This document shows, in pieces, positions 14,269 through 32,000 of a stretch of 32,000 nt of DNA. A program made the position numbers and the translations under genes. The notes beneath the pieces are model-generated. The model did no database searches. It was not told where the DNA came from and saw only the letters and a program-made list of their open reading frames with translations. The stretch is from Wallemia ichthyophaga EXF-994 (Eukaryota; Fungi; Basidiomycota): contig NW_008806275.1 in assembly GCF_000400465.1 (NCBI RefSeq), positions 120,001-152,000 on the forward strand, given 5' to 3'. How positions within the stretch are numbered: position 1 is the first letter of the stretch; every line of letters begins with the position of its first letter.

Positions 14269-15682
14269 ATGAATAGAAATTCTATAGCCAGTGTCAGCCA
14301 CAGCTATTTGAGTCTCATCGTGCTCAGGATTCTCGCTGCGAATGGATTCAACAGGTCATCACAGCAATCCATCGAGTCTCTCACCCACGTTCTTGAATGC
14401 TTTCTCCTCAATTTGGCCCAATCTGCTGCCGATTACGCCCACATCGGCAGAAGATCTGATGTCTCCACCCACGACGCTGCTTCTGCCGTGCATGACGCTT
14501 TAGGCGATAACTACTTGGATAGTCTACACGATCTCATTGAAGACTCTCCTCGTCTCCACCTCAACAAGTCTCCCTGGGAGATTGAATGCCAAAAGGCTTT
14601 ATCCGGTGCGTTTGCTGTGTGTTTGGTGCTGCCCCTTTAACTCTCCCAAAGACCCAGAATTCGTCGGCTACAACCTCCGCCCAAGAGCCGTGCGCTACGA
14701 TTATGATAGAGTGCCTGAATTCCCCACCGCATCCCTCACTCGCTCTTCATCCGATATGGACATTGAGGACGACAACGATTTATTCGGCCAATCTGAACAG
14801 CAGCAGGAAGCAGTGGAAGTGGAAAAGGAAATCGATTGTGAAGAAACTTTCGATGTCGACGACGCTACCCTCATTCCACCCAAAAAGCGCTTCAAAGATG
14901 ATGCGCAACTCGTTCCAGCCGGTTTCCCTGATTTGCCTACGCAGAATCCACTTGAGGATCTCCCTGATGCCGAGGACATACATGCCACGCCTCAACTACC
15001 AAAAGCGCGCCAACAAGATGTCACCCAAGACATCTACGACCCTTACCTCAACCCTATCCCCTACAACCAATCGCAGCTATCGTCGCTGCATCCATACACA
15101 CCCCTCACTGCAGAGAACAGCAAAGAGGGTGCTGACAGTGTATCCGAAGCTGATTTCCTCGCTTTACTCCTCAATGCACATTCGAGTGCTGCTCAAATAC
15201 CCCAACTTAACAAATCGAATGGCAAGAATGTACAGAGGGAGAGAGTGGGCACGCTGTTATCGGCAGTGACGTTGAGTGATTTCAGTGCAGCTGATTCGCT
15301 TTACGGAATGTTCCCAGCAGCTGGTTTGAAAACACAAGCCACTGCACCCGCACCCTCACACTACCAGTCGAATAAGGAGAAGGAGAGTATGGATAATTAC
15401 GCAGATAAACTCAGACCTGTCGCTGCACTTCCTAGCTCGGCTGTTGCCGCTAATGCCCTCTTTAAGGCTAGATCCCCACTCGCTGCTCTAGCTAGAGTAC
15501 TTCCGAGCGACTTTAATAGACGTGTGACGAGAATGAAACACCCTGAAGCCCTTCACGACCCAGCTCACAAACATAAATTCACTTATGGTAGACCGCACTC
15601 GGTTCCAGGCAAGGAGAAGGATGAAAAAGGTCACTTGATCTACACATGGGATCACAAGCTTAAGGATTGGGGTAAGAGTTAG
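14269..15682 (+). CDS. Bromodomain-associated (BTP) histone-fold protein, TAF3/TAF8-like
   Basis: The N-terminal histone-fold pattern is IVLRILAANGF...SIESLTHVLECFLLNLAQSAADYAHIGRRSDVSTHDA..AV. A 46-nt intron at 14606-14651 joins ORFs 14269 and 14537 in frame. Confidence 0.7.
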
Positions 15683-16645
15683 ACGACGTTGTATTAGTGT
15701 TTGAAAGTGGTAATATGAATGGTACTTGATGCATTACGTAATTGACGGACGAAACTGACGACACTGATACACTGACTGCGATGAATATGGATAGCCAACG
15801 TGGCCTTCAACTCAAGTTGAACATGAGATGAGCACCTCTACCACCCACCCATCACGAGCATTTGGACCATTCAATTGAAATTGAACGACACGTATCGGCA
15901 TCAATTCTGGGTATTAACTAAACAACATAAACAATCAAGATGAGTTTAGAAGACTAGTGTTGATTGTGCGCATGCAACACACACGACTAAATAATACTGC
16001 CAGCTCGCGTTAACAAACAAGTTGAATCGAAATCGTTAACCTCAGATCACCACTTGGGCATTTTAGGCCGCACATGCCAAATCAAGCACATGAAGATGTC
16101 TAGGAAGGTCAAGTGGATTGGGTTGATGGGAAGCACTCCCCCGGCTCACAAGACTCCCCAGGAAAGTGGTGGCTGTCGCAACAAATGTGTTTACTGGAAA
16201 GCAACAACAAACAATATATCCAGCAGATTACCAAGTTAAAGTATTGCCCGTTCGCTAAACAGATTATTCATTACTCTGATTCAGCGATGACGGCAATCTC
16301 ACACTTGAAGGCTGGGGAAATTCCCGAGATGTTAGGGAAGATATACCATCGCCTGCTGGAGGCTTAGGGAGAAGATATTGAGTGAAATTGAGCAAGAAAA
16401 GGCGTTCGCCATATCTGTCGTTGAAGCTATACGAAAGGAAGCGTGTATTGATTAACAAGAATAAGAATCTACTGAAAGATTGAGCTCCATTTCAATGGCT
16501 TTGTATATTGTACATGCAACCACCCAAATGGTCCCAGCCTAAAGCGGAAAGGAGGTCTACAACAAGCAAAGGAGAAAAGATTATTCAAAATACACAACAC
16601 CCCTAAAACTCGTTTTATCTCATTAATACAAATTTTTCGCACTCG

Positions 16646-16680
16646 AGAGGAGATTTGCCGGGTGAATTAAATCTTCCTCT
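16646..16680 (+). promoter_or_regulatory. Inverted repeat (hairpin) immediately upstream of the eIF5A start
   Basis: AGAGGAGATTT (16646-16656) pairs with AAATCTTCCTCT (16669-16680), giving 11 bp with one bulge around a 12-nt loop. The function is not demonstrated. Confidence 0.4.
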
Positions 16681-16693
16681 TAGACAACTATCA

Positions 16694-17317
16694 AGTAAGA
16701 AATTTTTGAGAAAAGAGTTGAGTACGGCTGATTGTACGACGCAGTGAGCGACCACGAGGATCAACCAACTTTCGAATCAGCTGGTTAGTTGCTGTCAGGT
16801 GATATACGTGTTTACGCTGACATGAGGGAATTCAGGTGCCGGTGCTGCCCAGACTTACCCAGCCCAATGCTCTTCATTGAGAAAGAACGGCCACGTCGTC
16901 ATCAAGGGCATGCCTTGTAAGATTGTTGATATGAGCACTTCCAAGACTGGTATGTGGGGTGTACGCTTACAGGATTAGCTCAAAATACCACTAGGAAAGC
17001 ACGGTCACGCAAAGGTCAACCTTACTGCCTTGGATATCTTCACCGGCAAGAAATACGAGGATGTCTCACCATCCACCCACAACATGGACGTTCCAAACGT
17101 CAAGAGAACTGAGTTCCAATTGGTCGACGTCGACGACGGTTTCCTCAGCTTGCTCATGCCAAACGGCGATTCCAAGGACGACGTCAAGGTCCCAGAGGGT
17201 GAATTGGGTGAAAAACTTGAGAAGGACTTCAAGGATGGCAAGGATCTCATGGTCTCCATCCTCTCCGCTATGGATAGAGAATCTTGTGTTGGCTACAAGG
17301 AGGCGCCACAAAACTAG
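16694..17317 (+). CDS. TIF51A: Translation factor eIF5A; start codon split by intron 1
   Basis: The spliced product is [52 protein letters not shown]|[22 protein letters not shown]...KEAPQN*. The hypusine motif SKTGKHGHAK is intact. Intron 1 is 16695-16744. Confidence 0.95.
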
Positions 17318-17491: not shown

Positions 17492-18729
17492 ATGAGAGCA
17501 AGTGTATTCTTAGTTGTGGAGTTGTTTATAGTAGTCTTTGCACTGTCCATTCTCTACACGGTCCTGCCGGCACACAAAGAGCCATTTTTCAGACCAGCAG
17601 ATGTGATGGAGAGTAAGGTGAATAACGAGCTTTTTCGAGCACCCTACAACGAAGTTTATCCACCACCGCGATCTTTCGAAGAGCCTGACTTTGGGCTGCT
17701 TACGAGCTCACCGCCGAGCCACTACCCTTGTAGCTCAGACAATGCACCGCGGCTATTCATCGGCATCTTCAGTACGCCAGACCCATCAGCTACAGCGCGC
17801 CGTGCGCTAATCCGCTCGCTCCTTTCGCAGACTTTCGAAGCAGTCGGTAATGCTGTGCTTGAGTACAAGTTCGTAGTGGGCACGAGTGAGCATGATAGTC
17901 AAAACAACGCACTCGCACAGGAGCATTCGGTGCATAAAGACATCCTTACCTTACCCACAAGCGAGAACATGAACAGCGGCAAATCGTACGCCTACTTCCG
18001 AGCGCTACTCGAGATGCACAAGCGCGACCCAGCCTTCACGCCGCAGTTTGTGGCGAAATGTGACGATGATACCCTGCTAGTTGTGCCTGCAGTCCTCAAC
18101 TCACTGAGTGGGCTACAGTGCGATCAGAATGTCTACTGGGGGACTTCGGCAGGACGCAGCAATCACTTCCCGGAGTACTTTCGCGGTCTCGCTTATATAC
18201 TCTCTTGGCCTCTCGTAGGATGGATCGGGGGGAGCGATGTTGGAACGCTGCACCAGCACGGCATCGAAGATGCTAGGACAGGCCAGTGGATGCAGATGCT
18301 ACCATATCTCTCACCCAGTGAAAGCGTCAGGCGTGTAGATAATAAGTGGAACATGGGAGATTGGAACCAGCTGAGCATCACGCAGGATACGCTGGCTTTG
18401 CATTGGTAGGTGTCACATCTGTGGCTGTCTAATGCTAGTCACGAATCCGTAATTACCCATCACTTATCACTCATACTCGTCCCAGGCTTAAAATGGACGA
18501 CTGGTATCGCACTCAGGCGGCTCTCATCGACGAGGCGTGGGACCTCACCAACGGTGCGTGGGTCTGGCGGGGGTTGCCGTCTCAAGAGGAGGAGAACCGG
18601 CGCAAGGAGATGCACAGAGTGGCTGTCGTGGAGAAGGCAATGGTGCGAGAGGCGTCCGAGAAGAGCGGGGTCTTGTTCGATGATGCTGAATATAACCGGT
18701 TACATCCGGAAGGGTTCACTGTGTTTTAG
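17492..18729 (+). CDS. Type II membrane glycosyltransferase, GT31 (galactosyltransferase-like) family
   Basis: An N-terminal signal-anchor is followed by RLFIGIFS, ARRALIR, YKFVVG, EHSVHKDIL.L...ENMNSGKSY.YF, AKCDDDT (DxD), RGLAYILSW and EDARTGQW. An intron near 18407-18487 joins ALHW|LKMDDWY. Confidence 0.8.
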
Positions 18730-18963
18730 CACGTCACGTGTCTTGGTTATTTTTTCGCTCTTTAATCGCATGCACGGGACGTGCACGGGATATACATGGA
18801 CATTGAACAGTAGACATTTATGCATGTACATAGAGAGAAAGAAAGAGAGGTATGGATGGTGTGGAGGAGGTATGAATTGTGCATAGAGGGTGAGTTGGGC
18901 GTTGAGAGCTGTGCACTGTGTTTGTATGCGCTGTTGTGCTGCTATGATTTATGCTTCAATGCT

Positions 18964-19339
18964 TCATATAAACCACCTGCGACTATTCCTGGCTGGTCTC
19001 TTACCCGAGCACTGCGGCTGTGTTAGTTAAAGTTGCACTAGAGCACTAAGCACTGTAGCAAAGCACCACATCACACCACACTCACAAAAGCATCGTCGCA
19101 GAACTCGTGTTGGGCTTTACACATGAGGCCACAGATGTCGCAACTCCAGTAGCAATCGACGTTGGACACGCCTGGATCGCTGACTGTCTGATTGGTGCGC
19201 TGCGTCGTGCGTGTGAGTTATTCTGCATGTTGTATTCTGTTTGTGGATACCTCCACACTCCTTCACAACTCACCTGGCTGATCGCACCACTAGCACTGCT
19301 AGAGACACTGGACTGCGACGGATTATGTACCATTTTCAT
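18964..19339 (-). CDS. Three-exon microprotein (75-77 aa) with a RanBP2-like zinc finger; not in the ORF track
   Basis: Exons 19339-19274, 19199-19086 and 19011-18964 (or 19017-18964) are separated by two phase-0 introns with GTGAGT donors, CTCAC/CTAAC branch motifs and CAG acceptors. The product is MKMVHNPSQSSVSSSASGAISQRTNQTVSDPGVSNVDCYWSCDICGLMCKAQHEFCDDAFCSGKRPARNSRRWFI*. Confidence 0.7.
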
Positions 19340-20103
19340 ACTCGGTTTTATTTCTTCGACACCCAGCAGACGTTACGACGTTACGGAAAAGCAGCCAAGG
19401 ATTCGCAAATTTATAAGCTACGCCCGGCAGCCGCGTGCCGGGAACTTGATCACTGAGGGGCGGTTGTGCGGGTGAGTGGGTTCCTGGAAGAGGAGTAGTG
19501 GTGGGAAGAGTGGTGTGTGTGTGTGGTGTATATGTGTGTATGTTGAATGAATTAATTCCTCACGTCACCCCGCGATAGAGTCCGATATGGAAAACAAGGT
19601 ACAGGTGCAGGATCGAATCAAACCAAGAAAAACCATGAACCAAATATTGGGGAAGGAGATTAAGGAGAAGGATTAAAATCAAAAATAAGGAAATTAATTT
19701 GAGTTTTGATGAATGGAGTATTGCGGATACGCGGCAGGTACAGCGGGATGTAAGGGTAGGTTGGGAGAAGCAGCTCTTCTAGCAACTTACCCATGGCTGT
19801 GTGTTGTTTTCCACCTTATTGTGATAATCGAGAAATCTCAACTGCGATTAATTTGCACCTCGGTATCAATTAGATAAGTAGAAGCTGTTTAAATGATATA
19901 TAGCGTGTATAGCGTACATGTCTGTGCTTATAAGACTCCATCACTTTGTTCATCTATCGCAAGCTGAGAAAGTTGATCGAGCAATTGTACGCCTTGAATT
20001 TAAAGGAAGAATATAAATAATGAATAAAATATTTCAAGTACATTATGAACACCACCAAATATACCGACCCGACCCTCCGTCTTCCAATACACTCACAACA
20101 CCC

Positions 20104-21334
20104 ATGGACCACACACGCGACGATAAATTGGTCTTTGAGAGCAGCGAGGAGGTTAGCGTGGCTACGTCATTTGATAAGATGGGCTTGAACGAGGATTTGA
20201 TCAGGGGGATTTATGCGTATAACTTTGAGAAGCCTTCTGCCATCCAGCAAAGGGCTATCGTACCTATAACCAAAGGCAGAGACGTTATTGCTCAGTCGCA
20301 GTCAGGCACCGGCAAGACTGGCAGCTTTGCTATATCGGCTCTTCAGGCTATTGATACGAATGTGAGGGATACACAGGCGTTGGTGTGAGTTGGAGCGGTA
20401 ACATGGATTATCCCAGCTAACAAATCACAGACTCAGCCCTACACGTGAATTGGCCACACAAATCCAATCCGTGGTCCTCGCTCTCGGTGACTACCTCTCC
20501 GTCCAATGCCACGCTTGCATCGGTGGTACCAGTGTTGGTGAGGATATCCGCAAACTCGACCACGGCCAGCACGTAGTCAGCGGTACTCCTGGCAGAGTAT
20601 ACGACATGATCCGCCGCCGTAACCTCCGCACGCGCAACATCAAAATGCTCATCCTCGACGAGGCAGACGAGCTCCTCAACCTTGGTTTCAAAGATCAGAT
20701 ATACGACATCTATCGCTATCTTCCACCAGCGACTCAAGTAGTCTTGTTCTCAGCCACCCTCCCTCACGATGTACTCGAAATGACCACCAAGTTCATGACT
20801 GATCCTATCCGCATTCTCGTTAAGCGCGATGAGATTACACTCGAAGGTATCAAACAGTTCTTCGTCGCTGTTGAAAAAGAGGAGTGGAAATTCGACACAC
20901 TCTGCGACCTCTACGACACCCTCACCATCACACAAGCTGTGATATTCTGCAACACGCGCAAAAAGGTCGACTGGCTTACTGATAAAATGCGTGAAGCTAA
21001 CTTTACTGTGAGCGCTATGCATGGTGAAATGCAGCAAAAGGATAGGGATGGAATCATGAATGAATTCAGGGGTGGAAATAGCAGAGTCCTCATCACTACT
21101 GACGTCTGGGCTCGTGGTATCGATGTCCAGCAAGTCAGTCTCGTCATCAACTACGATCTCCCAAGTAACCGTGAAAATTACATTCATCGCATTGGTAGAT
21201 CAGGCAGATTTGGTAGGAAGGGTGTTGCTATCAACTTTGTAACCACGGAAGATGTTAGGATACTCAGGGATATTGAGCAGTACTACGCTACTCAAATAGA
21301 CGAGATGCCACTTAATCTCTCTGAAATGGTTTGA
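20104..21334 (+). CDS. FAL1: DEAD-box RNA helicase eIF4AIII/Fal1 (exon junction complex core)
   Basis: All DEAD-box motifs are present ([45 protein letters not shown]). The eIF4AIII-type ends [11 protein letters not shown] and [10 protein letters not shown] are also seen. There is one intron at about 20385-20430. Confidence 0.93.
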
Positions 21335-24026: not shown

Positions 24027-25461
24027 TAAACGCTGTTGAAAGTTCACAAAGAGGGCACCATGTTCGACTTTGTCGGGATAAATTAAATTAAATATAAATT
24101 ACAAAAAATGTTTCATATATTCCTCACGACGCAGGCGTTTTATCTGTTTATATGTTAGAATGCCCCTAAACATAATTGTAAACCCACTTGCTGGCCGAAC
24201 CCCCGAGCAACCCGCTTGGTGAAGCTCACAGCGCTCGTTTGTAATTGGATTAACGAATCTGCAAATGTTACATATCCATAATTCAGCAAATGGCTAAATA
24301 TGTTATTAGCCTCGCCGCACCCGCCACACCTCCTCACCATTTTCTGTAGTTGATTGACAGTATTTAATGACACAAATTAATAAAACAAAGAGATTGACAT
24401 GCTTTCATTTTTTATTTTATTCCTATCGGTCTCTCTCCCCTTTGCAACCTGGCCTGTGTGTATAGCTGTTAGCCTGGATAAGACACTGGCAACTTCACCC
24501 ACTTCAAACACCTCAAACACACTAAAGGTACCTCCATTCCACATCTGTCACATACCCAGATCCTGTGGCTTTCTTTCAGCGAGCGTAAACAGTTCTCCTG
24601 TTTCTTAGTTTCGCTTGTTTACTCAATGCCTCACCCACAAAAGTCATATTGAAAAAGTTGTGAAAACTTTGTAATCGCTGGAAAAGAGCGTTTAATACAC
24701 CTACATCTCTTATATACTCGCCCTTGATTGACCTCTTGAAATGTACTTGATAATCTCATGACTACTTTGCTTTTCTAATCACATTTGTGCACTTAATAGT
24801 TTCAGGTAACATTGACCAACGCGTACAAATACGCGTAGATTCTTTCCTTTTGTCTCATTTCCAAACCCCTACACACTCCCTCTAAATTCACGCTTTCTTT
24901 TTAACAATACATAATCTGGTTACATCCCAACACCTTTACTCCCCCCCATTATCAACTCTCTCTTCTCTTGTCACACCTGTCAAACTCATGTCAGCACCCC
25001 CGCTTGATGAAAGCCTCCGAACTGACGCACATGTTACAAGTTTGGTAAACTATCGGTATAAGATACTTGCAGCTACTGCACTTCCAACATCCTATGGCTG
25101 CTGATCTGTCTTTGTTCATTGCAATTGTAGTACTTGAAGTTTTGACGTTAAATTATCAGTCTAGATTAATAGCTGCAGATGAGAATGTAAATCTCCAACC
25201 TGTCATTCTAGACCTGTTCTCTAATAACTCCAGAATCTCCTGCTCACGTGGTTTTTCAATCGTTCCGCTTATTCATTCATGCATGACATTCCAATTTGCA
25301 AATCATTCGCAAATGTTTCTTCATCATATCACATCCGAATTCTCATTAACCCTCAACAATCACATCTTAATATCCTCACTTGTCATCACACTGTCACTGC
25401 CATTGTCACCGCCTCATCGTTTCACAAACAATATGTATTGATGTAATTGGTATAATACATT

Positions 25462-27679: not shown

Positions 27680-29563
27680 TTAGAGCGTGCTTTTTTCGCG
27701 AGCAGTAGCGGTGCCTTGATTGATATCCATGTACTGCATAAAGTTGTTCAGCGCCAACTCAGATCTGGTTGAGTAGCTGTCCATGGTGTATCCAGCACCA
27801 GCAGCAGCTGTATAGTTATTCGTACCATTGTAGCTATAGTTGTTTGGAAGGTTAAGTGATTTTAAGTGAGACACTGACGAGCGTGGAACTAATCTGCTGT
27901 AATTCGCGTAGTTGTAGTTGTTCAACAAGTCCATTTGAAGCGGCTCGATTGGAGATGGTTCGGGTGATGTACCAGATTGAGTAGAGTTGCTTGGTGTCAT
28001 CGACAATGGTGGTAAATCTGATGCGGATGAAACTAAACGTGAGCTTGTACGAGATGGTGACGAAGAGAGAGATACTCCAAGTGGACCGCTACTACCAGGA
28101 AATAAGGTCGTATGTGATAAGTCGCGATGAGCTTCAGCTCTCAAATGATCCCTATTGAACGCTTCAATAGTCTTGTATCCACTGATAGGTGAATATTCTG
28201 GTAGATCGTTAGTGAATTGTGTAAATTCCGATAATTTTCCTTTGGCAGGAGTAGCTGCAGCAGAGTGAGATGCAGTTGCATGTAACTGAGGTGGTGTTGA
28301 TAAAGGAGCAAATGAAGTATTGGATAATGTTATTTGTGGACGATGAGTGACAGATGCGTAGCTACTGAGACTTTCGGATGCGTTTGCACTTCTAGCCAGA
28401 GTTGGCGTGTGTTGTAATGTTGGGTTGGCTACTGATGGTCTGAGCAAAGAAGGACTGTAGAGTAGGCTATTTGATCCAGCCATAGGCTTTGATCCGATAA
28501 TACCAGCACTAGTTGATCTCTCCAAGCTGCGTTTGTGTTGATGTTTTGGTGTTGCTAAGTTTGAAGAATTGAAAGCTGGATGAATGCCAGGTTTCTGTGG
28601 ATCTTGAGAACGGTCTTGAGAACGGTCTCGAGAACGGTCTTGAGGCTTCGCCGGCATAGCAGGTTGAATAGACGCAGGAGGCTGGATATTGCGCTTGTTG
28701 GCTTGGTTACGTTGATTGCTGCGCTGCTGGCTTCCTTTCTTTGACTTATCCCTATTGTTTCTTCCTGGTTTACCGTCTAAAGCTTCCATTCCTTGGAATG
28801 ATCCGGATAGCGCGAAGACACGCATGCCCATATCGAAAGCGGTCTGAACTTCTGGTTCGCAGAGGGCAATTTCCTTTTTTAAGAAGTGGCGGGGAATTTC
28901 GTCTTTGTGATCGCCCTCGTAAACACAAGTATCACGTTTTGCCCAGCTCTGTAAGACGATATTAGTGATGACGTTGAGTAGACAAGAAATGAACTCACGA
29001 CCATTTTGCAATTGTTGCAAAACCAATCACCAACTCTCGTCCATTCGACTTTGCTCGTCGCCAAATGTAGTATACAGTGATACGCAAAGTGAGAATCGAG
29101 GTGCTTGACGTACTCGTCAATAGCCCACATGGTGATAATTTCGCGAGAGGGAGTAACGCCTACAGGGAGTTTGGCTCTGACTGGGAAGAATCCGAGTGCG
29201 CATTTGTCTGCAGGTATGTCTCTGCCTCTAACGTACGGGATCTTGTTGAAATCATCCATAGAGTGCAGTTCCATATCGGTGGACGGACGCCCGAGAAACT
29301 TGTAAAGGATTAGGCACTCGTAGAACTGCTTTATATGGCCTCGTGAGTTCTTGAACCTGGACATGTCCTTGAAAGTTACTTGATCGAATGAATGCTTCGA
29401 TCTGTTAGCCTGTACTGATTTCGCGAGTTGGTGTATGTCGAGTATATCCTCGCTGTATGGCATTTTATTAGCGTCGTAAGCACAAGAAACCATTCCTGCG
29501 ACGGACTCACCGGGGTCTGTCAACTTGCCCACGCACGCCCGCGCTCATCTGAGTGAGTGACAT
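27680..29563 (-). CDS. Protein with an unassigned N-terminal domain, a degenerate RanBP2-type zinc finger and a long S/P/Q/N-rich tail
   Basis: The start MSLTQMSAGVRGQVDRP|REDILD is at 29563. A GTGAGT...CTAAT...TTACAG intron near 28930-28998 joins the two ORFs into EWTRVGDWFCNNCKMV|SWAKRDTCVYEGDH. Confidence 0.75.
28602..28644. repeat. 12-bp coding tandem repeat (about 3.5 copies) encoding QDRS/RDRS
   Basis: The sequence tcttgagaacgg tcttgagaacgg tctcgagaacgg tcttgag encodes PQDRSRDRSQDRSQD. Confidence 0.85.
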
Positions 29564-30638: not shown

Positions 30639-32000
30639 TCAGTTCAAGCAAAACTCCACGAGTGCTGTTGACGCTTTAAATAAAGCATCCTCGACGTCTT
30701 GCTCCGATGGTGAGGTTGGTATATCCTTGGTATGTTTGTTTGTGATGTTCTTGCCGACCGCGTTCTCGTTGTTGTTGAATGGATCAAACTTGTTTGGAGA
30801 CGACTCAGCTGATTGCGGTGGAGAAGGCAAGTTGGCGGTAAAGTTTGTCTGGTATGGGTTCGCTGTCTTTGCCTTTGGTCTGCCAATAGGCTGGATACCG
30901 GATCCTGAGCCCGACGATCTACGTTCAACTGGCTGGGCGTCAGCGTGCAGATCTGCAAGTGTGAAGTTGTCTGAGGTGGTCGAGATGGGTGACGAGATGG
31001 GAGTGAGCAGACCGGTCGACTTGAGGGGCGCTGGAGACAGATTGTAATTGTGGTCCTGCTGCGACCATCCCGAGGCAAATATTGGCAGCAACGGTGTAGG
31101 TGGGTTGCGTCTCGAGTTGTTTGCCCTCGAGCGCTGTCTCGATAGGAATCCGTTATTCTCTGGGAACGTGTTCGATGCGCTGCCAGTTGGCATCCACGTG
31201 GTGTCGAAGCTTGTAGACGTTGGGAGGGGCGACGTGGACAAACGTGGTGCTGCTTTTGCCTTGTTTGAATGTGCTTGAGCGTGTGCGCTAGCTGGGTTCG
31301 ATCCCACTCCGCTCCCGGTCGATCCAGTTGACGAGCGAGACGACGAGCGCATTGGCAGCGGTGCAGACTGTGGCATCTGTGCAGAGACGCCGGACTGCAC
31401 CTTGGCTGGCGTGATTGGAATCCTCTTCTTGTCCGCTTCTGGGGAGCGTCTCGATGCTGCAGTGCCTGTCTCTATCTTTTCTCCACCCGAAATGAGCATT
31501 ACCGTTTCACTCTTTGCGAAAGCATCTAATGCCTCGACACAAAGAGCATTTCGCAACGCCACTCTCACCGGTGGCTGCTGAGGGCGAGCTGTTTGAACCG
31601 ATGACTTGTTAACAGGATCATTTCCGCTGGCTCCACACTCGCGGCATTCGTTCTTTGATGCCCAGCATAAAAAGCGGCATTCTGAACAAACCCAGTCTCC
31701 CATTTCGTACCAGTGCTCAATACCCTGAAGATGTCACGTCAGCATGCTACTTTCCAGCACGCTGGTACTCACAATATCTGGTCGTCCAATCTTGCATAAA
31801 TGATCCTCGAGCACGGGTGCCTTGTTGCCTACGCCTCCCTGTGGCAGCTTGAGGCCAGTCTTGCAGATCTCCTCTGCGTCCCACTCCTTGTCGGCTGGAA
31901 GGTGCAGCCATATAGGCATGAATGCTATCCTCGACATGCCCGACTCAAGATCCAGTCCAGGCAGTGTAGCAAGCTCGCTGACGTGCTGGAACATTTTACA
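30639..32000 (-). CDS. RanBP2-type zinc-finger protein with an S/P/T-rich tail; 5' end lies beyond the window
   Basis: A GTGAGT...CTGAC...TTCAG intron near 31725-31772 joins ...HLCKIGRPDI|GIEHWYEMGDWVCSECRFLCWASKNECRECG, which is a W-x-C-x2-C-x10-C-x2-C finger. Confidence 0.75.

Follow-up and report, generated by a model that had tools for sequence, protein, structure and literature searches.

What does the apparently empty interval between a glycosyltransferase gene and a DEAD-box helicase gene encode in Wallemia ichthyophaga, the most halophilic fungus known? The interval lies in a 32,000-nucleotide (nt) stretch of the genome of strain EXF-994 (hereafter the window; KE007225.1:120001–152000), in which window coordinate w corresponds to KE007225.1 position 120000 + w. 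An earlier reading of the letters of this stretch (the original prediction) had proposed that the interval hides an unannotated three-exon gene on the minus strand, encoding a microprotein with a non-canonical RanBP2-like zinc finger. This gene, here called gene A (J056_002030, EOR03952.1, GME498_g), is a genuine spliced protein-coding gene with its own promoter. It is probably an independently transcribed gene for an intracellular zinc-ribbon microprotein of the RanBP2/NZF type that belongs to a local family, which includes the nearby microgenes B, C2 and C3. Around gene A, the window matches the EXF-994 reference base for base, and the interval looked empty in the list of open reading frames (ORFs) because a stop-to-stop ORF list is blind to spliced genes.

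Gene A and its conservation in Wallemia

Gene A is encoded on the minus strand in three exons. The coding part of exon 1 (19339–19274) specifies a Ser-rich, poorly conserved N-terminus and is followed by intron 1 (19273–19200), a phase-0 intron of 74 nt with the signals GTGAGT..CAG. Exon 2 (19199–19086) encodes a conserved SDPGVSNV motif and most of the finger, including its Trp (at 19148) and Cys ligands 1–3. Intron 2 (19085–19012) is likewise in phase 0 and 74 nt long (GTGAGT..CTAAC..CAG) and holds a non-conserved tandem AG at 19019–19018. Exon 3 (19011–18964) supplies the last finger Cys and a conserved basic tail, C-S-G-[KR]-R-P-[AP]-R-N-S-R-R-W-[FY]-[IM], and ends with the stop codon at 18966–18964. 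When translated from the first ATG, the spliced product has 75 amino acids (aa; MKMVHNPSQSSVSSSASGAISQRTNQTVSDPGVSNVDCYWSCDICGLMCKAQHEFCDDAFCSGKRPARNSRRWFI) and contains the motif W-S-C-x2-C-x3-C-x6-C-x4-C. The exon and intron coordinates, the product and the motif are thus exactly those originally predicted, and the GenBank model (370 bp, 19333–18964) has the same two introns and the downstream acceptor, differing only in its use of the second ATG as the start.

The existence of a GenBank model also means that the gene is neither hidden nor unannotated, as had been supposed. A database search with the spliced 75-aa product returned a single protein with 97% identity, a 73-aa W. ichthyophaga “hypothetical protein” (EOR03952.1 = J056_002030 in EXF-994; also TIA74665.1, TIA83076.1, TIA92079.1 and others) that is annotated in identical form on 17 W. 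ichthyophaga contigs, those of EXF-994 and 16 further strain copies. Its expression has been published as well, under the name GME498_g. The EXF-994 annotation was made with GeneMark-ES alone (PMC3849046), and that of the other W. ichthyophaga strains with MAKER, which took the EXF-994 proteome as evidence (PMC6738226). Every annotated copy of gene A therefore traces back to one ab initio call, and independent evidence for the gene was needed. The same MAKER-type pipeline called no gene A in W. hederae, and the W. mellicola assemblies also lack an annotation for it.

Syntenic loci were fetched via the adjacent glycosyltransferase gene from W. hederae (L011), W. mellicola (L012, L013) and two syntenic Wallemia-like assemblies, L014 (Logan SRR25399871) and L015 (Logan SRR33769985), giving, with W. 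ichthyophaga, a comparison of five species of this salt-loving genus. L014 groups with W. ichthyophaga and W. hederae, and L015 lies near W. mellicola (dS, the synonymous divergence, about 0.45). The glycosyltransferase–helicase interval, 1.8–1.9 kb long, holds no eukaryote-style gene model in these other Wallemia loci: the annotations of W. hederae and W. mellicola are empty there, and L014 and L015 have only ORF calls made in a prokaryotic style, so that their spliced genes show up as read-through ORFs (e.g., P0044). Using tblastn, exon 2 was found on the expected strand with 76–86% aa identity (E = 1e-20 to 3e-24), and exon 3 was also found. In blastn, the exons of gene A were picked up, but not the introns. 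Explicit gene models yielded an intact three-exon ORF of 71–76 aa in all five species, with both phase-0 intron positions kept and intron lengths of 44–74 nt. Intron 1 interrupts the same site throughout (..CAG/GT..AG/CGCAC, slashes marking the splice junctions), with lengths of 45–74 nt and 42–59% identity between the more divergent species, and intron 2 directly precedes the codon of the last Cys in each of the five. The search of related genomes that had been proposed as a check was thus passed, with orthologues in four other Wallemia genomes in which the frame is kept and the Trp and four finger Cys are invariant.

Purifying selection on exons 2 and 3 is strong. The proportion of non-synonymous differences (pN) in these exons is 0.07–0.13 vs. 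0.68–0.95 for synonymous ones (pS), and the ratio of the corresponding rates, dN/dS, is about 0.05 in the two species pairs for which dS can be estimated. Variable columns among the orthologues number 9, 7 and 38 at codon positions 1, 2 and 3, of 47 each. In nine of the ten species pairs, the introns are 42–63% identical vs. 72–82% for exons 2 and 3; in the close pair of W. mellicola and L015, identity rises to 92% and 81% in the two introns and to 91% in the exons. Constraint is weaker on exon 1 than on the other two (pN 0.23–0.52 in the nine more divergent pairs), and the basic tail in exon 3 is 73–94% identical across the genus. The introns do not appear to host small nucleolar RNAs, since an Rfam scan of 18400–20500 found no RNA family. 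An exhaustive phmmer search of 1.84 billion representatives recovered only the annotated protein, the unspliced ORF call P0044 of L014 and repeat-driven noise, with nothing beyond Wallemia, and a word-indexed search of 5.8 billion proteins, by sequence and then by family profile, yielded the annotated W. ichthyophaga protein and nothing else.

Within the species, ten W. ichthyophaga strain loci were compared. Gene A carries two coding single-nucleotide polymorphisms among them (19095 and 19089), both at synonymous third positions, and no non-synonymous ones. The 75-aa frame from the first ATG (19339) is intact in this sequence, but that ATG is specific to W. ichthyophaga and has no counterpart in the other species, and it was rejected as the ancestral start. 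The conserved start, which is also the annotated one, is the second ATG at 19333, where the other species read AAA-ATG. A similar fate befell the tandem acceptor. An AG located 6 nt upstream of the intron-2 acceptor, which would insert Pro-Gln (PQ), is indeed present in the reference sequence, but position 19018, a G in the reference, is a C in eight of the ten strain loci, which abolishes the upstream acceptor, and no tandem AG is found at intron 2 in any other of the five species compared. The acceptor that is homologous across species is 19012/19011. The PQ isoform was consequently rejected as the conserved form and would at best be a strain-specific minor isoform. Further upstream, a CA-rich tract in the 5′ flank at about 19510–19545 (acacacatatacaccacacacacacacc) is the apparent site of length differences between strains, and in six of the ten loci (L001, L004, L006, L008, L009 and L010) the alignments lose register upstream of about 19526.

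A TATAAA box is found on the minus strand at 19410–19415, 71 nt upstream of the first ATG, and its context (TATAAATTTGCG) is kept in W. ichthyophaga, W. hederae and L014. This conserved upstream box supports the view that gene A is an independent transcription unit. The region at 19410–19442 consists of a palindrome, CCCGGCA-N6-TGCCGGG, and then TATAAATTTGCG. Within the palindrome is a CGG-N10-CCG inverted repeat (CGGCACGCGGCTGCCG; 19425–19440, minus strand), a candidate site for a Zn2Cys6 transcription factor. W. hederae and L014 have the same palindromic element, 15–20 nt ahead of their TATA box, and W. ichthyophaga and L014 share 89% identity over a 54-nt block that covers it. Repeats of the form CGG-Nx-CCG are known sites of Gal4/Put3-type factors, and the palindrome may function in the same manner. 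A Zn2Cys6 factor is encoded about 2 kb away.

The transcriptome published in 2013 lists GME498_g, with exactly the 73-aa sequence of gene A, among the genes that are down at high salinity (Table S6, sheet DownAtHighSalinity), annotated as “no significant similarity found” (PMC3849046). For this 222-nt gene, the study reports 115.33 reads per kilobase per million mapped reads (RPKM) at 10% NaCl vs. 28.05 at 30% NaCl, from 501 and 125 reads, respectively (log2 ratio −2.04, false discovery rate 7.3e-56), the reads having been mapped to genome and gene sequences (PMC3849046). The published expression shows that gene A mRNA is four-fold lower at 30% than at 10% NaCl. GME498_g was located via the sequential GME numbers of its neighbours along the scaffold, which run from GME495 (3264 nt, elongation factor 3, EF3), GME496 (1839 nt) and GME497 (1158 nt, glycosyltransferase) to GME499 (1095 nt, helicase) and GME500 (2508 nt, transcription factor) (PMC3849046). 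At 10% NaCl, gene A stands above the helicase (RPKM 82), glycosyltransferase (52) and transcription factor (75) genes; at 30% NaCl, its RPKM of 28 lies below theirs (122, 94 and 86, respectively).

The finger of gene A and its relation to RanBP2-type zinc ribbons

The gene A protein, at 73–75 aa, is likely to consist of a disordered Ser-rich N-terminus, one small Cys4 zinc ribbon and a basic, aromatic-ended tail ([KR]RP[AP]RNSRRW[FY][IM]). No signal peptide is visible in its sequence, so the protein is presumably intracellular. Judging by their spacing and conservation, C40, C43, C54 and C59 (73-aa numbering) are the likely ligands of one Zn2+ ion. These four are invariant across orthologues and paralogues; the extras, C36, C47 (at the position of the canonical Asn), H51 and position 58, are confined to particular lineages. 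At position 58, W. ichthyophaga has Phe and the four other species have Cys, their exon 2 ending in C-E-D-[AP]-C to give C-C across the junction; the Phe represents a substitution in W. ichthyophaga.

RanBP2-type fingers (Pfam PF00641, Zn_ribbon_RanBP) are described by PROSITE PS01358 as W-x-C-x(2,4)-C-x3-N-x6-C-x2-C. Like the fingers of Nup153 and RanBP2, that of gene A has a Trp two residues before the first Cys and a C-x2-C first knuckle (W-S-C-D-I-C), and W-x-C-x2-C is invariant in the five orthologues, B, C2 and C3. The third Cys follows the second after ten residues, and C43-x10-C54 is invariant in the family alignment. Gene A also shares with these fingers a basic, Pro-containing stretch past the last Cys, and it may share the two-hairpin zinc ribbon, which the shallow-alignment model predicts for it. 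The description of the finger as RanBP2-like, with Cys in place of Asn, a widened second knuckle and a last Cys contributed by exon 3, applies in all five species.

Profile comparison with hhalign used a reference of ten fingers that had first been validated against PF00641, with column-shuffled profiles as controls. Gene A aligned with C2 (Prob 91.6%), C3 (91.8%) and B (79.7%), scores that none of 60 shuffles reached in each case, and C1 and C3 aligned with the RanBP2 reference (92.8% and 87.4%; 0 of 100 shuffles each). This provides a transitive route from gene A to RanBP2, via A–C3 at 91.8% and C3–reference at 87.4%. C3 also has sub-threshold Pfam matches to Vps36-NZF-N (E = 4e-4) and Zn_ribbon_RanBP (E = 0.004), at 13.8–16.8 bits. 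An AlphaFold2 model built from a five-row alignment of window-encoded paralogues gave the finger a predicted local distance difference test (pLDDT) score of 80–86 and two short strands. A Foldseek search of the PDB with this model produced a list made up almost wholly of RanBP2/NZF fingers (Nup153, RanBP2, Trabid, TAB2, Npl4), none with an E-value ≤0.001. The best match was the third finger of Nup153 (ZnF3), with a root-mean-square deviation of 0.8 Å over 28 columns, a template modelling (TM) score of 0.86 and a probability of 0.98, although the E-value was not significant.

Other finger classes share some of these features. The fingers of the NZF class (Npl4, TAB2/3, Trabid, HOIP, and Vps36 NZF-N, PF16988) have the same predicted fold class, and the best sub-threshold Pfam match of C3 is Vps36-NZF-N; the Foldseek list for gene A includes the NZF fingers of Trabid, HOIP, TAB2/3 and Npl4. 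However, in place of the ubiquitin contacts of these fingers, a T-F after the second Cys and a hydrophobic residue within the second knuckle, gene A has G-L and D (R-F and L in C3), and no neighbour or domain is related to ubiquitin. The spacing also resembles that of the single-stranded RNA-binding fingers of ZRANB2, FUS and RBM5, and the N-V-N that follows the first knuckle in paralogue B is also seen in ZRANB2. Unlike those proteins, gene A lacks the N-x-N-[FW]-x-x-R residues between the knuckles, reading G-L-M-C-K-A-Q-H instead, and has no RRM or RS domain. Finally, W-[VS]-C-x-I-C-G is a textbook rubredoxin knuckle. Profile searches of PDB sequences gave nothing significant, and their best matches were rubredoxin metal knuckles at E = 0.0016–0.006, but these matches span only 8–9 residues, and a complete rubredoxin fold has 50 aa and two C-x2-C-G knuckles separated by about 30 residues.

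Several observations weigh against placing gene A in the RanBP2/NZF class. All five orthologues have Cys where Asn is expected, at the fourth residue past the second Cys, and the second knuckle is C-D-D-A-F-C (C-x4-C) rather than C-x2-C; it reads C-E-D-[AP]-C-C (C-x3-C-C) in the other species, has x5 in B and x6 in C3, and the canonical x2 is found only in C1. The gathering cut-off of PF00641 (27 bits) is not reached, with no match at E ≤ 10 for the gene A protein or its orthologues, although ten genuine RanBP2 fingers scored 25.6–46.7 bits in the same tool. The Pfam scan found no family of any kind at E ≤ 10 for gene A or its orthologues, and its paralogues pass no cut-off. Compared directly with the RanBP2 reference, gene A aligns weakly, if in the correct register (Prob 26–44%, reached by 1 of 300 and 2 of 100 shuffles). 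The known ligand signatures are missing: besides those of NZF and ZRANB2, gene A lacks the L-V-x-N..A-C residues with which Nup153-type fingers contact Ran. Its finger also stands alone in 73 aa rather than forming a module of a large protein. The five rows of the AlphaFold alignment were hand-chosen, some of them RanBP2-like from the outset, which may have biased the model toward that fold, and the single-sequence model was unusable (pLDDT 45.6). That neither the PDB-sequence nor the Foldseek search gave a significant match is attributed to the domain being only about 28 residues long. With 7–8 Cys and one His, another metal stoichiometry or ligand set is also possible.

On balance, the domain is probably a variant RanBP2/NZF-like zinc ribbon, its zinc binding and fold being deduced from spacing, profile comparison and a shallow-alignment model. 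Since the Asn, the C-x2-C second knuckle and the hidden Markov model cut-off were all tested and found wanting, it is not filed as a member of PF00641. The link to RanBP2 made by the original prediction thus stands in part: the Asn is still present in B and C3, C1 and C3 match the RanBP2 profile and gene A matches C2 and C3, but gene A itself has no PF00641 match, no Asn and a C-x4-C knuckle. The structure prediction that had been proposed as a check gave a similarly divided answer, as RanBP2/NZF fingers were retrieved with the five-row model, but without a significant E-value.

Finger microgenes in the neighbourhood

The ORFs near gene A in the window encode EF3, a fungal Zn2Cys6-type transcription factor, a DEAD-box helicase and a GT31 glycosyltransferase; eIF5A is a further neighbour. 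The helicase gene, which is eIF4A-like, is divergently oriented and about 770 bp from gene A. Gene models in part of this region disagree among assemblies (L005 12017–15065; L011 8001–10016; window about 14500–17300). The EXF-994 model GME496 fuses a Bromo_TP-domain gene with eIF5A (612 aa) and a W. hederae model fuses eIF5A with the glycosyltransferase (547 aa), genes that are split in other strains, and the length of the glycosyltransferase model varies from 372 to 421 aa between assemblies.

A scan of the six-frame translation of the window for W-x-C-x2-C gave seven matches, all on the minus strand, vs. 0.86 expected. Three of the seven lie in 24124–25119, a stretch that is unannotated in all assemblies examined, and correspond to three microgenes on the minus strand, C1–C3. 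C1 (24952–25119; exons 25119–25031 and 24976–24952) encodes 37 aa, MNKDRSAAIGCWKCSSCKYLIPIVYQTCNM/CDKRRES, with a canonical W-x-C-x2-C-x10-C-x2-C whose second knuckle is split by the intron. C2 (24423–24647; exons 24647–24639, 24597–24503 and 24453–24423) encodes 44 aa, MTF/ENCLRSLKESHRIWVCDRCGMEVPLVCLRCLK/PGCKGERDR. C3 (24124–24340; exons 24340–24338, the ATG alone, 24293–24188 and 24143–24124) encodes 42 aa, M/PFAELWICNICRFVNPITNERCELHQAGCSGVRPA/NKTPAS, and keeps the canonical Asn. These genes have one or two introns of 41–54 nt, and the coding first exons of C2 and C3 are only 9 and 3 nt long. Each is intact in all five species with GT..AG introns, and each displays third-position bias (10, 8 and 17 variable columns by codon position in C1). 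A 642-nt intron obtained for C2 in L014 was dismissed as false, the exon-1 landmark having matched an earlier ATGAAATTT; by eye, the intron is about 48 nt (GTCAGT..CCAG).

A further paralogue, B, of 53–54 aa, is found about 500–670 bp upstream of the gene A orthologue on the same strand in the four other species, and is unannotated in all four. It has exons of 21, 36–39 and 105 nt, and the W. hederae product is MFLSALV/NWPTSMNNLPACW/VCGFCFNVNRIQEELCINHFSCRGKRPPLEELLL. Its finger is W-x-C-x2-C-x3-N-x6-C with the canonical Asn, and B was located on the minus strand at L011 11081–11158, L012 10339–10416, L014 10425–10502 and L015 10331–10408. In the last exon, a single residue varies over the four species, the penultimate one (L, V or I), with 5, 1 and 26 variable columns by codon position. 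A tblastn search of the W. ichthyophaga window found no B. W. hederae is the sister species of W. ichthyophaga (PMC6738226). By parsimony, B was probably lost or moved in W. ichthyophaga, since it is missing from the window yet present in this sister species.

In an alignment of 15 sequences from A, B, C2 and C3, the Trp, the four Cys, one Gly and one Arg are invariant, and the shared signature is W-x-C-x2-C-x10-C-x4-6-C-x-G-x-R-P. The members have 42–77 aa and three exons, carry this signature, lie in the helicase/transcription-factor neighbourhood and are intact in four or five species. Pairwise hhalign Prob values within the family are 77–92% with 0 of 60 shuffles, except for C2–C3 at 37% (also 0 of 60). 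C1 is left outside this family because it does not align with gene A (Prob 1.4%). By sequence comparison, A, B, C2 and C3 are shown to form a genus-wide local family of stand-alone single-finger microprotein genes, alongside which lies the more canonical C1. The family probably arose through local duplication.

Two further W-x-C-x2-C matches, at 29025 and 31694, are fingers at the start of larger genes, of the form GDW-x-C-x2-C..W-A-[KS]-[RK], which resemble the ZRANB2 flavour; one of them also has Cys for Asn. This one is located at 31614–31703 (minus strand) in a 354-aa ORF (30639–31703) that begins MGDWVCSECRFLCWASKNECRECG. It has full RanBP2 spacing with Cys in place of Asn, as in gene A, and Pfam returned no match. 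The other, at 28930–29031 (minus strand) in an annotated 591-aa gene, reads GDWFCNNCKMV/SWAKRDTCVYEGDH, is split by a 50-nt GTGAGT..CAG intron and has Ser for Asn and no C-x2-C second knuckle.

Proposed role and competing explanations

A quite different function would follow if gene A encoded a Cys-rich metal-buffering or redox microprotein, in which 7–8 Cys and a His within 27 residues bind two metals or cycle between thiol and disulfide in the ion and oxidative homeostasis of a halophile, the RanBP2-like spacing being incidental. The presence of eight Cys in four of the five orthologues (C-x3-C-x2-C-x3-C-x6-C-x3-C-C) together with a conserved His, the response of the mRNA to salinity and the rubredoxin knuckles at the head of the PDB sequence matches are all consistent with such a role. 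However, only four Cys are invariant in the family, and the two-metal or redox explanation is weakened because B, C2 and C3 lack the extra Cys and W. ichthyophaga itself has Phe in place of one. The residues other than Cys are equally conserved (SDPGVSNV, W, G-x-R-P, RNSRRW), which indicates a specific fold and interface. The composition is also unlike that of metallothioneins, with 7 Cys in 73 residues (9.6%) and W, Y, F and H within the Cys region, and the rubredoxin similarity is confined to one short knuckle. This explanation is considered unlikely. Far less probable is a precursor of a processed peptide, either dibasic-cleaved or resembling a ribosomally synthesized and post-translationally modified peptide (RiPP), in which a Cys-rich core of 34 residues, with invariant prolines (D-P .. 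K-R-P) on either side, would be set free and cross-linked. P29 and P64 do not vary in A or B, P64 follows a K/R-R pair, and basidiomycete RiPP precursors are short and lack signal peptides. Nevertheless, the neighbours (helicase, glycosyltransferase, eIF5A, EF3 and transcription factor) include no modifying enzyme, protease or transporter, the tail past the putative cleavage site is the most conserved part of the protein, and the core is zinc-ribbon-like in the model.

Two other explanations concern the gene rather than its product. The three exons might not stand alone but belong, as terminal or alternative exons, to a longer transcript, such as one that runs on from the transcription factor gene or the upstream paralogue, as all finger microgenes are on one strand within about 6 kb and the annotation is unstable, with models fused and split between strains. 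Against this, four of the five species have in-frame stops 12–57 nt ahead of the conserved ATG; the exception is W. mellicola, whose frame is open back to an ATG 162 nt further upstream. The TATA box and promoter block are conserved just upstream, the position of the stop codon is conserved, and the opposite-strand helicase gene separates gene A from the C1–C3 cluster, all of which makes a longer transcript highly improbable. Lastly, gene A could be a spurious ab initio call on a non-coding, spliced divergent transcript from a promoter shared with the eIF4A-like helicase gene. All database entries do go back to one GeneMark-ES prediction, the divergent helicase gene is only about 770 bp away and no homologue was found beyond Wallemia among the 1.84 billion representatives. 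However, frame, start, stop and both intron positions are kept between species whose synonymous sites are saturated, and the dN/dS of about 0.05, the third-position bias and the conserved TATA box of its own leave this the least credible explanation of all, effectively refuted by the comparative data.

For the preferred RanBP2/NZF-type microprotein, a tentative role can be sketched. The finger and tail might together form a stand-alone module that binds a protein or an RNA, and the product could then act as an adaptor for, or competitor of, larger finger proteins. Transcription would be controlled by salt, possibly via the CGG-N10-CCG site in the promoter. MicroProteins, a concept developed in plants and animals, are small single-domain proteins that titrate larger relatives. 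The gene A protein resembles them in its single interaction domain, in its tiny size and in its paralogy to domains of larger proteins encoded nearby; the mechanism is proposed by analogy alone. It is conceivable, if doubtful, that the Wallemia microproteins are regulated by salt and serve as decoys or adaptors for the molecules that larger finger proteins bind (Ran, ubiquitin chains or RNA) and that the widened-knuckle finger with Cys for Asn represents a distinct structural subclass.

Gene A has been a hypothetical protein in GenBank since 2013, yet it is among the salinity-responsive transcripts of its host. The present analysis adds a probable fold class, likely metal ligands, genus-wide orthologues and four neighbouring finger microgenes. 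Standard pipelines missed the gene A orthologues in W. hederae and W. mellicola, B in the four species carrying it and C1–C3 in every assembly examined. The family is restricted to the genus in the data searched, which limits its scope. The cluster constitutes a compact test case for micro-exon microgenes that escape annotation, for the tolerance of the RanBP2 finger to change (Asn to Cys, a second knuckle of 4–6 residues) and for stand-alone fingers as regulators. If the microproteins do turn out to be salt-regulated decoys or adaptors, the most halophilic fungus known would have a layer of regulation in the manner of microProteins.

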